From the sequence record OZ240615.1: DNA of 64,000 bases, one strand, 5' to 3'. The notes beneath the pieces are model-generated. The model was given only the letters and a program-made list of their open reading frames with translations, made no database searches and was not told where the DNA came from. The translations under genes were made by a program, and so were the position numbers. Positions 53,897 through 59,691 of the stretch are shown here, one piece after another; positions within the stretch are counted from its first letter, which is position 1, and every line of letters starts with the position of its first letter.

Positions 53897-53946
53897 GGTA
53901 TTTTACCTTTAAAAAAATAAGATTAACTGATTCATAAAAATAACAG

Positions 53947-53975
53947 CATAAAGAGAGGACCTTCCGGTCCTCTCT
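53947..53975 (-). terminator. Hairpin ending the tRNA/ncRNA transcript, followed by TATG
   Basis: AGAGAGGACC/GGTCCTCTCT at 53952-53975. Confidence 0.75.
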
Positions 53976-54114
53976 CGTACTGACTTATCGTCAAAAGGAT
54001 CTCAGTGTTTAGCTCATAAATGACTTATCGCACATCATCCTTTTCATGTTAAGGTCGCCACCGAAACATGTTTATTCTCGGCTATACGAGTTAGCTTAAT
54101 TTCCAGATTTTTAA

Positions 54115-54340
54115 TACTCGATCCCTTCTACGTTGGAGAAATGGATCGAATAGGGTGACGCCCCCGGACATTTTTGCCGGCTCCTTGCACCTCTTTCGCC
54201 GGAATCCCCGGCTGAGGTCTATGGTCTATGGCCGCCTATTTTCGCTCTAAGGCGTAGGCCGCCGAAAATGACAGGCGTCATAATTAGTACCCCTCGGCCG
54301 ATTCCGCGGCGCGTTTAACCGGCGGGTCGCCGAAGTCTTT
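54115..54340 (-). ncRNA. Candidate GC-rich structured RNA of unknown class
   Basis: No ORF; nested helices TGACGCC/GGCGTCA, ACCTC/GAGGT, GCCGG/CCGGC, GCCTA/TAGGC, TCGATCC/GGATCGA. Confidence 0.5.
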
Positions 54341-54495
54341 GTCTCCCAGAGTTACCAATAAGTTATTGCTCATTGGACAAATCATTCGGGTTACGATCCC
54401 GAACTCCCTTAGCTAACAAGCCTCTACTACTGAGCAGGAATCTAACCTGCACTCTCTGTAAACAATATCACTTGACTAGAGTAGTATTGTAAAGG

Positions 54496-54603
54496 TGGTT
54501 GATAGGTACCGAATCGAACGGCTATCTCGGGCTCCCATGTTAAGGCGCCCCTCGCATGGGAGGGGGCCTAATGCCCGCGCTTTACCTTTAAGCTAGCCTA
54601 TCA
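54496..54603 (-). ncRNA. tRNA-like RNA with 40-nt pseudoknot-capable anticodon loop
   Basis: Acceptor TGATAGG/CCTATCA plus A-CCA, D arm, stem CGGGC/GCCCG, T loop TTCGATT; 108 nt. Confidence 0.8.
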
Positions 54604-54612
54604 TTGAAAATG

Positions 54613-54687
54613 CGACTCCTCCAGGACTTGAACCTGGGACCTACGGTTTAACAGACCGCCGCTACTAACCAACTGAGCTAAGGAGTC
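54613..54687 (-). tRNA. trnN: tRNA-Asn(GTT), CCA not encoded
   Basis: Cloverleaf; GCGGT-CT GTT AA-ACCGT; discriminator G. Confidence 0.9.
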
Positions 54688-54693
54688 ATTATT

Positions 54694-54795
54694 TGGTTGT
54701 TCCCGACCGGGTATGATCCGGTAACCTCCTGCTAAGCAGTGGGCGGCACAGTGGCCGCCGATGCAGGCGCTCTACCTAGTTGAGCTACGAGAACA
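54694..54795 (-). ncRNA. tRNA-like RNA with 30-nt hairpin-containing anticodon loop and 8-bp acceptor stem
   Basis: TGTTCTCG/CGGGAACA plus A-CCA, D arm GCTC/GAGC, stem CCTGC/GCAGG, T arm ACCGG-ATCATAC-CCGGT; 102 nt. Confidence 0.8.
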
Positions 54796-54802
54796 TTGTA
54801 TC

Positions 54803-54878
54803 TGGAGCAAGCAGCGAGGTTCGAACTCGCGACCTATGACTTGGAAGGACATCGCTCTACCAACTGAGCTATGCTTGC
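54803..54878 (-). tRNA. trnG: tRNA-Gly(TCC)
   Basis: Cloverleaf, U73, CCA; one T.T mismatch in the anticodon stem. Confidence 0.9.
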
Positions 54879-54887
54879 TTTATTGAG

Positions 54888-54959
54888 CAGAAGCACCTAG
54901 ATTCGAACTAGGGGTACGGAGATCAAAGCCCCGGGCCTTAACCGCTTGGCTATGCTTCT
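54888..54959 (-). tRNA. trnQ: tRNA-Gln(TTG), CCA not encoded
   Basis: Cloverleaf; CGGGG-CT TTG AT-CTCCG; G73. Confidence 0.88.
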
Positions 54960-54966
54960 ATGCGTT

Positions 54967-55050
54967 TGGTGGGGAAGGGTAGATTCGAACTACCGAAGCC
55001 GAAGCAGCAGATTTACAGTCTGACCCATTTGACCACTCTGGAACTTCCCC
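54967..55050 (-). tRNA. trnY: tRNA-Tyr(GTA)
   Basis: Cloverleaf with long variable arm, CT GTA AA loop, A-CCA. Confidence 0.92.
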
Positions 55051-55233
55051 TGAATTTGGGGCCCGATTATTTCAGCGCTGCATTCTTTACTCTCGGGCCA
55101 AGGAGCACTATTAGTTTCTTCTCAGGGCGTATTGTTTTCCCTCTGAGACTTGCGCAATGTTTGAACATGTTGATTGTTGTCTTAACATTCCGGAGAGAAA
55201 GTTACAATCTTTGTTCACAAGATATTGATTTAC

Positions 55234-55593
55234 TTAATTTTTGATCTGCGCATCAGGATTCCCATTAACCGACAGCCAAATATCGGCAACTAAAAGAATC
55301 TGTCCGCCATACTGATTGACCTGCTGCCACCCATTCTTTTTAGCGGCAACTGTAATCATTGATAAAAATTGATTTTTCCAATGACTTTGATAAATCTGGG
55401 AATGATGAATTATTCGGCGGTTTTCAAACTTCTCGATAGTCTCAAATTCTTTCGTCGCGCTGATCATAGCAAAAACATCTTTAGACTTGATCAAATAAGC
55501 AGGGTCATTAATAGACCGATCGGAAGCTAAAGGAAGACGAGAAGAAATATGGTCAACGTCTTCTTGATTGTGTGCAAACGTTACGTCGTTCAT
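55234..55593 (-). CDS. Hypothetical protein within the tRNA cluster
   Basis: 119 aa, AAAGG RBS. Confidence 0.65.
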   Translation of the reverse strand: MNDVTFAHNQEDVDHISSRLPLASDRSINDPAYLIKSKDVFAMISATKEFETIEKFENRRIIHHSQIYQSHWKNQFLSMITVAAKKNGWQQVNQYGGQILLVADIWLSVNGNPDAQIKN

Positions 55594-55675
55594 TTTTACT
55601 TTTACCTTTTACAAGTTAGCGGTCTAAACCAAAATAGGAAGACCAACAAAAACTGTGGGATGAATAATAATGAAG

Positions 55676-55749
<74 letters not shown>

Positions 55750-55754
55750 GTAGA

Positions 55755-55839
55755 TGGTGCCCAGGGCGGGGCTCGAACCCGCACGCGATAAAGCGAGGGA
55801 TTTTAAATCCCTTGTGTCTGCCGATTTCACCACCTGGGC
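55755..55839 (-). tRNA. trnL: tRNA-Leu(TAA)
   Basis: Cloverleaf with long variable arm; AGGGA-TT TAA AA-TCCCT; A-CCA. Confidence 0.93.
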
Positions 55840-55844
55840 AAATA

Positions 55845-55884
55845 TGGTGGGTCCAGCAGGTTTTGAACCTGCGACCTATAGCTT
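55845..55884 (-). pseudogene. Orphan tRNA 3' half (starts at the anticodon loop)
   Basis: AA-GCTAT-AGGTC-GCAGG TTCAAAA CCTGC-TGGACCC-A-CCA; no matching 5' half found nearby. Confidence 0.75.
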
Positions 55885-56337
55885 AGGTTTTATGTTTCCT
55901 TTTTGGCAACCTTTACGGTATTCTTCTAAATTAAAAACACCATTTACTGAGTATTTTACAATAGTAGCAAAAGGCAGTCCGGTAAAAAGAGATGCATCCC
56001 GAATACTATCATAAACCCACCCATCGATGGTCCATGTCATTCTTAATTTATCTGACCCATCACGGTGTGCATCTTTACTATCGTAATAATTATTGAGGTG
56101 AGTCCCTTTTTCGACGTGGTCGGGATTACAACACCTACGATTGTTGCATTTATGTCTAACGAGCATATCTTCTGGAATTTCCCCTTTAGACATTGCATAG
56201 GCTAGTCTATGGACATTCCATTTTACTTTATTAATATTTATCTGCCCGTAACCTTGACTTGTAGATTTTGTCCAGTTCCAACAACCCGTTTCTTTATCGA
56301 TATCAATTTTGTCTTTTACAATATCGTAAAAGTTCAT
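55876..56337 (-). CDS. Free-standing HNH homing endonuclease
   Basis: CWNW...HRLAY...VRHKCNNRRCCNPDHVEKGTHLNN (HNH) plus C-terminal NUMOD1-like DNA-binding segment (YDSIRDASLFTGL). Confidence 0.88.
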   Translation of the reverse strand: MNFYDIVKDKIDIDKETGCWNWTKSTSQGYGQININKVKWNVHRLAYAMSKGEIPEDMLVRHKCNNRRCCNPDHVEKGTHLNNYYDSKDAHRDGSDKLRMTWTIDGWVYDSIRDASLFTGLPFATIVKYSVNGVFNLEEYRKGCQKGNIKPKL

Positions 56338-56359
56338 AAAGTGATTCTCTTAATGATAA

Positions 56360-56435
56360 TGGTGGCCCTGGCGGGATTCAAACCCGCGACCAAGCGATTA
56401 TGAGTCGCCTGCGCTAATCACTGCGCCACAGGGCC
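56360..56435 (-). tRNA. trnI: tRNA-Ile2(CAT, lysidine type)
   Basis: Cloverleaf closely resembling enterobacterial ileX (GGCCC...GGCGA-CT CAT AA-TCGCT...GGGCC-A-CCA). Confidence 0.85.
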
Positions 56436-59231: not shown

Positions 59232-59460
59232 AAGGGCGACGGATAAGGATATAACCATCCTCACCGCCACCCATAGCCATTCAGCTATAAACAGAATCCA
59301 GCGCGACCTATTTCACAATAAGATTGGGTTTAGGTTTATAATCTAGTGCTCTACCAGCTGAGCTATCTGCCTCCAAGAAACACTCTGTGAATGTGTCCAG
59401 GTAGGCAGAGCGGAATTCGAATCCGCGACCTCTAGAATTCTTTCCGTAAAAGAAAGAAAG
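59232..59460 (-). ncRNA. Circularly permuted tRNA-like RNA 2 (Y-RNA/YrlA-like topology)
   Basis: 3' half 59436-59402 precedes 5' half 59372-59342; acceptor AGGCAGA/TCTGCCT, anticodon-type stem CTAGA/TCTAG, perfect D and T arms; 29-nt linker. Confidence 0.8.
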
Positions 59461-59461
59461 T

Positions 59462-59691
59462 TCAGTCCGCTATTTTACTGTCTACTCTTTATCTTTAAGC
59501 GTGTGAGGCGATAAGATAAAGTTAACACTAACCATCCGAGTAGCATTATGGGTGCATTGATGACTGCGTCTACCAATTCCGCCATTCTCCCATAGTTTGG
59601 TGGGAGAAGAAAGATTCGAACTTCCAGTGAGGTCATCACACCTGCTATACGGACTAACAATAAAGATAAAGTTGGCCTCAATCTTTATTAT
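59462..59691 (-). ncRNA. Circularly permuted tRNA-like RNA 1 (Leu-type D arm; Y-RNA/YrlA-like topology)
   Basis: 3' half 59636-59598 (ends A-CCA) precedes 5' half 59591-59560; acceptor GGGAGAA/TTCTCCC; stem GTCATCA/TGATGAC; 6-nt linker. Confidence 0.85.

Follow-up and report, generated by a model that had tools for sequence, protein, structure and literature searches.

The Klebsiella jumbo phage vB_KpM_Centimanus encodes a transfer RNA (tRNA)-shaped gene, referred to here as E1, whose anticodon loop is replaced by 40 nucleotides (nt) predicted to fold into a hairpin. E1 occupies exactly positions 54496-54603 of a 64,000-nt stretch of record OZ240615.1 (hereafter the window; the record is 299,730 base pairs (bp) long and record position minus 62,000 gives the window position) and is read on the minus strand, from 54603 to 54496. 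Centimanus is phiKZ-like, and phiKZ internal head proteins are recognized in the window by Pfam. E1 is the final gene of a nine-gene minus-strand tRNA cluster, in which it follows tRNA-Asn, and it shares its strand and its 6-8-nt spacers with the neighboring tRNA genes. A second tRNA-like gene, E2, lies between tRNA-Gly and tRNA-Asn, 90 nt upstream of E1. It is held here with moderate confidence that E1 is a genuine, retained tRNA-shaped gene of the tRNA operon that is unable to decode as transcribed. The best reading is that of a stable tRNA-like RNA without a decoding role, comparable to species 1 and 2 of phage T4, and E1 probably acts as a non-decoding tRNA mimic.

Architecture of E1 and E2

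Read 5' to 3', the E1 RNA is UGAUAGG-C-UA-GCUU-AAAGGUA-AAGC-G-CGGGC-[40 nt]-GCCCG-AGAUA-GCCG-UUCGAUU-CGGU-A-CCUAUCA-A-CCA (Table 1). The original prediction described it as a tRNA body with intact acceptor, D and T arms and an encoded CCA, with a structured element where the anticodon loop should be. The 40-nt loop between CGGGC and GCCCG consists of exactly the nucleotides that were quoted, and the overall picture is borne out by the minimum free energy (MFE) fold calculated with RNAfold, a cloverleaf of -41 kcal/mol (z = -2.08) with a nested hairpin in the insert. All arms and the CCA are present, and a tRNA body with something else where the anticodon belongs is still the description that fits best. 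"Intact" is nevertheless too generous, since the T stem has only four pairs (one of them G.U) plus an A.A mismatch. The geometry is non-standard and can be drawn either as 7/5, with an extra nucleotide in the 8-9 connector and the A.A mismatch, or as 8/4 with a C.A mismatch.

The nucleotides of the tRNA elbow can all be read from the sequence (U8, A14, A15:U48, G18G19, T54-Psi55-C56 and A58), so that the elbow can form. According to the fold, A35-G37, which would have served as the anticodon, are base-paired within the nested hairpin. The acceptor has eight layers (U-1:A), followed by an A and the encoded CCA in that register, whereas in the canonical tRNAs of the cluster that have an encoded CCA, N73-CCA immediately follows a 7-bp stem; in E1 and in E2, the CCA is one nucleotide further out than in these neighbors. 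Modeling shows that the E1 transcript can fold as a cloverleaf with the elbow nucleotides, the encoded CCA and a hairpin in the place of the decoding end.

E2, which was absent from the original prediction, has an 8-bp acceptor starting with U, a 5-bp T stem (8/5), normal D and T arms and an A followed by CCA. Its body resembles T4 tRNA-Pro and its anticodon stem CCUGC/GCAGG encloses 30 nt. The inserts of E1 and E2 follow a common plan, i.e. a 3-nt 5' linker (AUU in E1, AUC in E2), a GC-rich hairpin whose top stem has 6 bp and whose loop has 6 nt, and a single-stranded tail of 9-10 nt, with the would-be anticodon bases paired in both.

A canonical elongator tRNA has a 7-nt anticodon loop with U33 and a purine at position 37. 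Neither E1, with its loop of 40 nt, nor E2, with its loop of 30 nt, has such a loop. Decoding is also opposed by the 8-layer acceptors with CCA in that register, by the C33 of E2 in two phages (FBKp24 and KpLz_1_41) and by position 37 of E2, where the sequence gives a pyrimidine under every possible single excision.

Table 1. Coordinates of E1, E2 and the other features discussed. Positions without a prefix are window positions; the others refer to the locus named before the colon.
Feature	Position	Strand	Details and basis
E1, tRNA-like gene, 108 nt	54496-54603	-	Sequence; ARAGORN with introns allowed; cloverleaf MFE; copies in 13 phage records
E1 acceptor, 5' strand UGAUAGG	54597-54603	-	U is position -1 if numbering starts from G; pairs with CCUAUCA at 54500-54506; 7/7 pairs invariant in alignment
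E1 D arm GCUU-AAAGGUA-AAGC	54579-54593	-	G18G19 present
E1 anticodon stem, 5' strand CGGGC	54573-54577	-	Pairs with GCCCG at 54528-54532; one natural C to U keeps the pair as G.U
E1 insert-bearing loop, 40 nt, AUUAGGCCCCCUCCCAUGCGAGGGGCGCCUUAACAUGGGA	54533-54572	-	Variable at only 2/40 positions among 11 fetched loci
Nested hairpin in E1 loop	54543-54569	-	AGGC/GCCU (4 bp), bulged C, CCCCUC/GAGGGG (6 bp), 6-nt loop CCAUGC; MFE and centroid structures
E1 loop, 3' tail UAACAUGGGA, 10 nt	54533-54542	-	Single-stranded in predicted fold; includes CAUGG at 54535-54539
E1 anticodon stem, 3' strand GCCCG	54528-54532	-	Fold and alignment
E1 T arm GCCG-UUCGAUU-CGGU	54508-54522	-	4 pairs; ARAGORN, fold, alignment
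E1 acceptor, 3' strand CCUAUCA, discriminator A, encoded CCA	54496-54506	-	Sequence
E2, second tRNA-like gene, 102 nt	54694-54795	-	30-nt loop AUCGGCGGCCACUGUGCCGCCCACUGCUUA with hairpin GGCGGC/GCCGCC; ARAGORN with introns allowed, fold, sequence
tRNA cluster around E1	54612-56435	-	In transcription order: Met(CAU), HNH endonuclease gene, Leu(UAA), Arg(UCU), open reading frame of 119 amino acids (aa), Tyr, Gln, Gly, E2, Asn
Likely intrinsic terminator of cluster transcript	53936-53976	-	GC-rich hairpin, then U-rich tract (local folds); ~520 nt downstream of E1
HNH homing-endonuclease gene	55876-56337	-	Pfam HNH_3; within tRNA cluster, between Met and Leu
Permuted tRNA-like module	59341-59434	-	T arm, closed acceptor UCUGCCU...AGGCAGA, D arm, closing stem CUAGA/UCUAG
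Second permuted unit	~59535-59665	-	3' half of Leu-like class II tRNA with ACCA, 6 nt, matching 5' half (UUCUCCC/GGGAGAA)
RtcB RNA ligase, FBKp24 gp230	L025:6956-8200		Pfam E = 4e-120
tRNA-Arg(ACG)-like gene of SPN3US/PhiEaH2-like jumbo phages, 119-120 nt	L019:12359-12478, L032:8359-8478, L011:12358-12476		48-nt insert exactly at 37/38, loop UUACGA/.../U
Viral tRNA-like gene	L041:5151-5244	-	E2 anticodon stem; 27-nt loop with CCCCC-GCGA-GGGGG hairpin, reminiscent of the E1 insert
Viral tRNA-like gene	L039:1689-1768		Anticodon arm capped by UUCG, no anticodon
Viral Met-like tRNA	L040:2625-2706		~10 extra nt after position 37

Detection of E1 and assignment to known RNA classes

As had been anticipated, standard finders miss E1 or leave it undetermined. 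ARAGORN makes no call at E1 with default settings, and Rfam gives no match to the tRNA model RF00005 at 54496-54603, either at gathering score or at E<=10, compared with 53-70 bits for the seven neighboring tRNAs. The E1 position bears no annotation in OZ240615.1, and the homologues of E1 and E2 are annotated 'tRNA-OTHER' in the record of vB_kp_MJ359. When introns are allowed, ARAGORN finds both genes and reports E1 as a tRNA-Pro(UGG) with a 33-nt intron. With the same setting, no call was obtained in 20 dinucleotide shuffles of the 64-kb window (1.28 Mb), which indicates that the tRNA shape of E1 is real and not a chance occurrence.

Other RNA classes were considered and rejected. For a transfer-messenger RNA (tmRNA), the ARAGORN tmRNA search was blank and G3:U70 is missing from E1. 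A tmRNA-like mini open reading frame of five codons can be read in the insert (AUG CGA GGG GCG CCU UAA), a reading rejected because the AUG is AUA in the commoner E1 variant (7 of the 11 fetched loci). E1 is not a YrlA or Y RNA-like RNA, as it has no match to RF02553 at E<=10 and the opposite topology. A repeated mobile hairpin was discarded as well, no further copies of the insert being found in the window with up to 3 mismatches.

Conservation and retention within the clade

A blastn search of 50,697 phage records found E1 and E2 in 13 records of one clade, all of them close relatives, and the E1 copies are 100% or 97.2% identical (105-108 of 108 positions). The carriers include FBKp24, MJ359, LPKP23, KpLz-2_45 and six 'Serratia phage Kp...' records, all on Klebsiella. 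Both genes are also carried by an IMG/VR metagenome contig (L009), and a search of IMG/VR with one exact 22-mer returned three contigs, which belong to the Centimanus clade. Synteny searches of viral and metagenome contigs with the neighboring 285-aa protein revealed no new variant of E1 or E2. A host origin was tested in 5,426 Escherichia coli genomes, in which neither gene had a match.

The tRNA content of the cluster varies among these relatives. E1, E2 and the genes for tRNA-Met, tRNA-Leu and tRNA-Asn are present in all eight distinct cluster arrangements; the variable genes are tRNA-Tyr and tRNA-Gln (missing from three), tRNA-Asp (from two) and tRNA-Gly, tRNA-Ser and tRNA-Arg (from one each). 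The natural changes in E1 are two substitutions in the hairpin loop and one in the anticodon stem that converts G-C to G.U, and no cloverleaf pair is broken in either gene. Those in E2 are situated in the linker or loop or improve pairing. In Centimanus, the pairing changes of E2 turn G.A into A-U at 49:65 and G.A into G-C at 7:66, and its T loop AUCAUAC has the universal U54/A58 swapped to A54/U58. Retention across the arrangements and pair-preserving substitutions point to a function of E1 and E2. Sequence identity falls sharply at both ends of E1, which also speaks for a retained gene.

Alternatively, an insertion into the anticodon loop could have disabled a tRNA gene, leaving E1 to be carried along as a neutral relic in a young clade of closely related phages. 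Such an origin would fit the close relatedness of all carriers, whose flanking non-coding DNA is 91-95% identical, as well as the mosaic nature of the cluster, with homing-endonuclease genes inside and tRNA-like debris downstream. It would also account for the imperfect T stem and connector of E1, and a related 119-nt element (L011) does have a degenerate anticodon stem when compared with its counterpart in L019. A relic is more difficult to reconcile with the persistence of E1 and E2 in every arrangement where six canonical tRNA genes are variably lost, or with cloverleaf pairs that substitutions leave unbroken or, in E2, improve. No uninterrupted copy was found either: when the E1 anticodon stem was searched with a loop of 7 nt, each of the 16 hits proved to be a chance match in GC-rich coding DNA. 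Lastly, E1 and E2 are two independent genes with one unusual plan (8-layer acceptor, A and CCA, 3-nt 5' linker, GC hairpin, 9-10-nt tail), which makes two random disruptions unlikely. Overall, the relic is considered an unlikely explanation, with about half the weight given to a retained gene.

Several observations weigh against a retained and functional E1. Only two E1 and three E2 sequence variants exist among the fetched loci, so that covariation has no power here. The non-coding 100-200 nt downstream of E1 are 91-95% identical and E1 is not clearly above this level, so that the conservation of the E1 sequence alone is no proof of selection. The region from E1 to the likely terminator (53977-54495, minus strand, ~520 nt) is non-coding and highly structured, and a terminator is annotated in the corresponding region of FBKp24. 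It contains a mini tRNA-like fold at ~54420-54486, with a 7-bp stem UACUACU/AGUAGUA and a T arm GCAGG-UUAGAUU-CCUGC, and a second T-arm-like hairpin UUCGGG-AUCGUAA-CCCGAA. These structured pieces are either tRNA relics or further small RNAs. As apparently decayed tRNA pieces, they would mean that the cluster does accumulate relics. In addition, no partner protein or target of E1 was identified.

Folding of the insert

The original prediction proposed that the insert forms an H-type pseudoknot, in which the loop sequence CCAUG of the hairpin CCCCUC/GAGGGG would pair with the downstream CAUGG, and that this pseudoknot is a functional cargo displayed on a tRNA scaffold. None of the cargo roles it named (nuclease decoy, synthetase or T-box ligand, ribosome modulator) gains support from the analysis. 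The 5-nt complementarity is real and present in E1 of both Centimanus and FBKp24, and the third loop (8 nt) would be long enough if stem 1 had 6 bp. The pseudoknotted fold is, however, neither favored nor conserved. The nested fold, with AGGC/GCCU below CCCCUC/GAGGGG, reaches -40.8 kcal/mol against -32.0 kcal/mol for stem 1 alone. A pseudoknot would therefore sacrifice a helix worth 8.8 kcal/mol for a duplex of -4.5 kcal/mol, before any pseudoknot penalty. A 5-bp stem 2 would also leave zero nucleotides between stems 1 and 2, and the 3-nt linker cannot reach the hairpin loop once the long nested stem of E1 has formed.

Natural variation leads to the same result. The commoner E1 variant carries C to U and G to A substitutions in the hairpin loop with an unchanged partner strand, and these uncompensated changes reduce the pseudoknot duplex to -0.9 kcal/mol. 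The pseudoknot stem is the sole E1 helix with a broken pair in the alignment. Judged by the refuting condition attached to the original prediction, the pseudoknot does not hold, since homologues vary without compensatory change at the very positions concerned, although the insert as a whole is conserved. In the sister element E2, the tail is a direct repeat of the loop sequence (CACUG...CACUG) and not its complement, which makes a pseudoknot impossible there. A pseudoknot as the functional form of the insert is accordingly judged highly improbable, and the nested hairpin is retained as the predicted structure of the insert.

Splicing of the insert

The call of a tRNA-Pro with a 33-nt intron raises another explanation, in which E1 would mature into a decoding tRNA once proteins had spliced out a short intron. 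An endonuclease would cut out ~33 nt and an RtcB-type ligase from host or phage would seal the ends, yielding either a tRNA-Pro(UGG) with the loop AUUGGGA or a tRNA(UAG) with the loop AUUAGGA. A group I intron is rejected, as the original prediction had rightly stated: the insert amounts to 33-40 nt where ~200 nt or more are required, and Rfam gives no Intron_gpI match at E<=10. The same prediction held that excision would leave a non-canonical A32 loop. The A32 is confirmed, but the loop is otherwise canonical for any single excision of E1.

Some evidence is consistent with protein splicing. The loop AUUGGGA left by the removal of 33 nt is identical at 6 of 7 positions to the T4 tRNA-Pro loop UUUGGGA, and the phage has no tRNA-Pro although CCA or CCU make up 48% of its Pro codons. 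The relative FBKp24 encodes an RtcB (Table 1), which is also found in KpSz_1, KpZh_1 and KpZh_LPS_45. More distant relatives of the SPN3US/PhiEaH2 type have a tRNA-Arg(ACG)-like gene with its insert exactly at 37/38. The would-be anticodon of E1 pairs with the insert, as in archaeal and eukaryotic intron-containing pre-tRNAs, which have a short insert in the anticodon loop, and one parse of E1 places the insert at 37/38 as well.

In contrast with these pre-tRNAs, E1 has no bulge-helix-bulge motif at any register when its sequence is inspected. Positions 32-35 fail to complement the four bases that precede the last two of the insert, in E1 as in E2 and the L019 element, and the predicted folds of the three display no such motif. 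Rfam reports no group I or ribozyme match at E<=10. No single excision from E2, built on the same plan, yields a canonical loop with a purine at 37, and two phages have C33 in this gene. The acceptor of E1, with eight layers and the CCA placed accordingly, is unlike that of an elongator tRNA. The C1:G72 pair is used by the prolyl-tRNA synthetase (ProRS) of E. coli, and E1 lacks it. RtcB is detectable in only 5 of the 13 E1-carrying records; tblastn found none in Centimanus or the other E1-carrying relatives, and gp229 of FBKp24 (563 aa), whose gene adjoins the RtcB gene, has no Pfam match. To our knowledge, no endonuclease for such introns has been described from bacteria or phages, nor do we know of a splicing endonuclease for E1-like inserts in phage or host. 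Splicing of E1 is thus improbable, clearly more so than a relic. A bolder proposal is less probable still, namely that E1 and the SPN3US/PhiEaH2-like gene with an insert at 37/38 would provide, for the first time in a bacterial virus, tRNA introns that are spliced by proteins and do not belong to group I. An unknown endonuclease would cut them and RtcB of host or phage would join the ends to give a working tRNA-Pro(UGG).

Comparison with known systems and putative function

No description of E1 or E2 was found in the literature, nor a transcriptome for the Centimanus phage group. The reading of E1 as a non-decoding tRNA-like stable RNA draws on its nearest natural precedent, T4 rnaC and rnaD (species 1 and 2). 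These are small stable RNAs whose genes, like E1, close a phage tRNA cluster at its 3' end and share its strand. The T4 cluster has a homing endonuclease gene inside, as has that of Centimanus, and rnaC shares with E1 and E2 a tRNA-type T arm (CCGGG-UUCGAAU-CCCGG). No sequence similarity between the T4 RNAs and E1 or E2 was detected, T4-family phages being absent from the blastn matches. Unlike E1 and E2, rnaC (139 nt) and rnaD (119 nt) have not kept the full cloverleaf; with introns allowed, ARAGORN gives a partial and doubtful 95-nt 'tRNA-Leu' inside rnaC and nothing for rnaD. E1 and E2 keep the four arms and the encoded CCA, and their main departures from a tRNA concern the anticodon loop and the length of the acceptor. 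The comparison is one of position and shape.

YrlA-type Y RNAs (RF02553) are also non-decoding tRNA mimics in which the D and T arms form an elbow, as is proposed for E1. They are circularly permuted, with a closed acceptor and with their ends in a stem that replaces the anticodon arm, whereas in E1 it is the anticodon arm that is closed, and the acceptor is open and carries the CCA. The nearest artificial parallel is the engineered 'tRNA scaffold', reportedly designed by Ponchon and Dardel, which shares the architecture of E1: a structured RNA sits on the anticodon stem where the loop would be. The scaffold retains the tRNA body so that RNase P processes the transcript and the product is stable in enterobacteria, and RNAs made in this way are stable in E. 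coli. The scaffold is artificial, however, and silent on the job of a natural insert. Some phage tRNAs counter anticodon nucleases, for example those of T5 against PARIS or retron systems, and their altered anticodon regions are linked to host defences that target tRNA. Like E1, they are encoded in phage tRNA clusters and altered in the anticodon region. They do decode, however, their 7-nt loop differing by point changes; lacking an anticodon loop, E1 could at most be a decoy and not a replacement.

A route for E1 can be proposed. E1 would be co-transcribed with the neighboring tRNAs and excised by host tRNA-processing enzymes, RNase P generating the 5' end and the encoded CCA setting the 3' end. 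It would then accumulate as a stable L-shaped RNA. The tRNA body would provide processing, stability and recognition by tRNA-binding proteins, making E1 a mimic rather than an adaptor, and the hairpin arm would block decoding and may offer a binding surface. Its most plausible task, itself a guess, would be to tie up or redirect a factor of host or phage that recognizes the tRNA body or the CCA end, such as a defence nuclease directed at tRNA or an enzyme of modification or repair. E1 is possibly a decoy of this kind, a suggestion drawn entirely by analogy, which counts against it. The same idea, of a 'sponge', has been raised for the array tRNAs of cyanobacterial tRNA arrays with HNH and RtcB neighbors (PMC8421152).

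Other tRNA-like elements and neighboring genes

Two further units on the minus strand of the window have a permuted tRNA-like organization (Table 1). The module at 59341-59434 scores 37.9 bits against Rfam YrlA, below the 69-bit threshold (E = 8e-7 locally), with a fold z of -4.6. It overlaps 'tRNA-Stop(tta)' at 59400-59483. The 'suppressor tRNA' annotated at this place in FBKp24 and called by ARAGORN may be a misread Y-RNA-like RNA. The second unit is closed by a long irregular stem like the Y RNA stem (z = -2.7) and is missed by Rfam YrlA. With two permuted YrlA-type modules in the window, tRNA mimicry recurs in Centimanus, a point in favor of the proposed mimic role of E1.

Expanded anticodon loops were also encountered elsewhere. 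The L011 copy of the tRNA-Arg(ACG)-like gene of the SPN3US/PhiEaH2-like jumbo phages has the degenerate anticodon stem mentioned above. An IMG/VR search with the E2 body and a long anticodon gap yielded three unrelated viral examples (L041, L039 and L040). In 185,579 genomes searched with the E2-body pattern, almost every genuine tRNA hit was an intron-bearing tRNA of archaea, and the bacterial hits were mostly chance matches in coding sequence. tRNA-like genes with an expanded anticodon loop therefore recur, though rarely, in viruses of bacteria.

Regarding the neighboring genes, a Pfam search of 20 window open reading frames identified the HNH endonuclease, an NMT1-like protein, DUF7873, ATPases and structural proteins. 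Among RNA-related neighbors, no Ro60/TROVE domain, nuclease or ligase was found in the same set. The HNH gene occupies another place in the tRNA cluster of KpLz-2_45, and the Met(CAU) gene of Centimanus is identical to that of most relatives at only 55 of 76 positions.

Implications for phage tRNA clusters

Phage tRNA clusters are now mainly read as counter-measures to tRNA-cleaving defences, together with codon supply. Non-decoding tRNA-shaped RNAs in such clusters have been without explanation since T4 species 1 and 2. Current annotation misses E1 and E2 or leaves them as 'tRNA-OTHER'. They represent a cleaner case, in which the whole tRNA body is kept and the decoding end alone is replaced, in two genes that are retained clade-wide. 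If they are spliced, tRNA maturation in bacteria would have a route not seen before. Should they act as decoys or as mimics that bind proteins, E1 and E2 would offer a simple handle on the host-phage conflict around tRNA.

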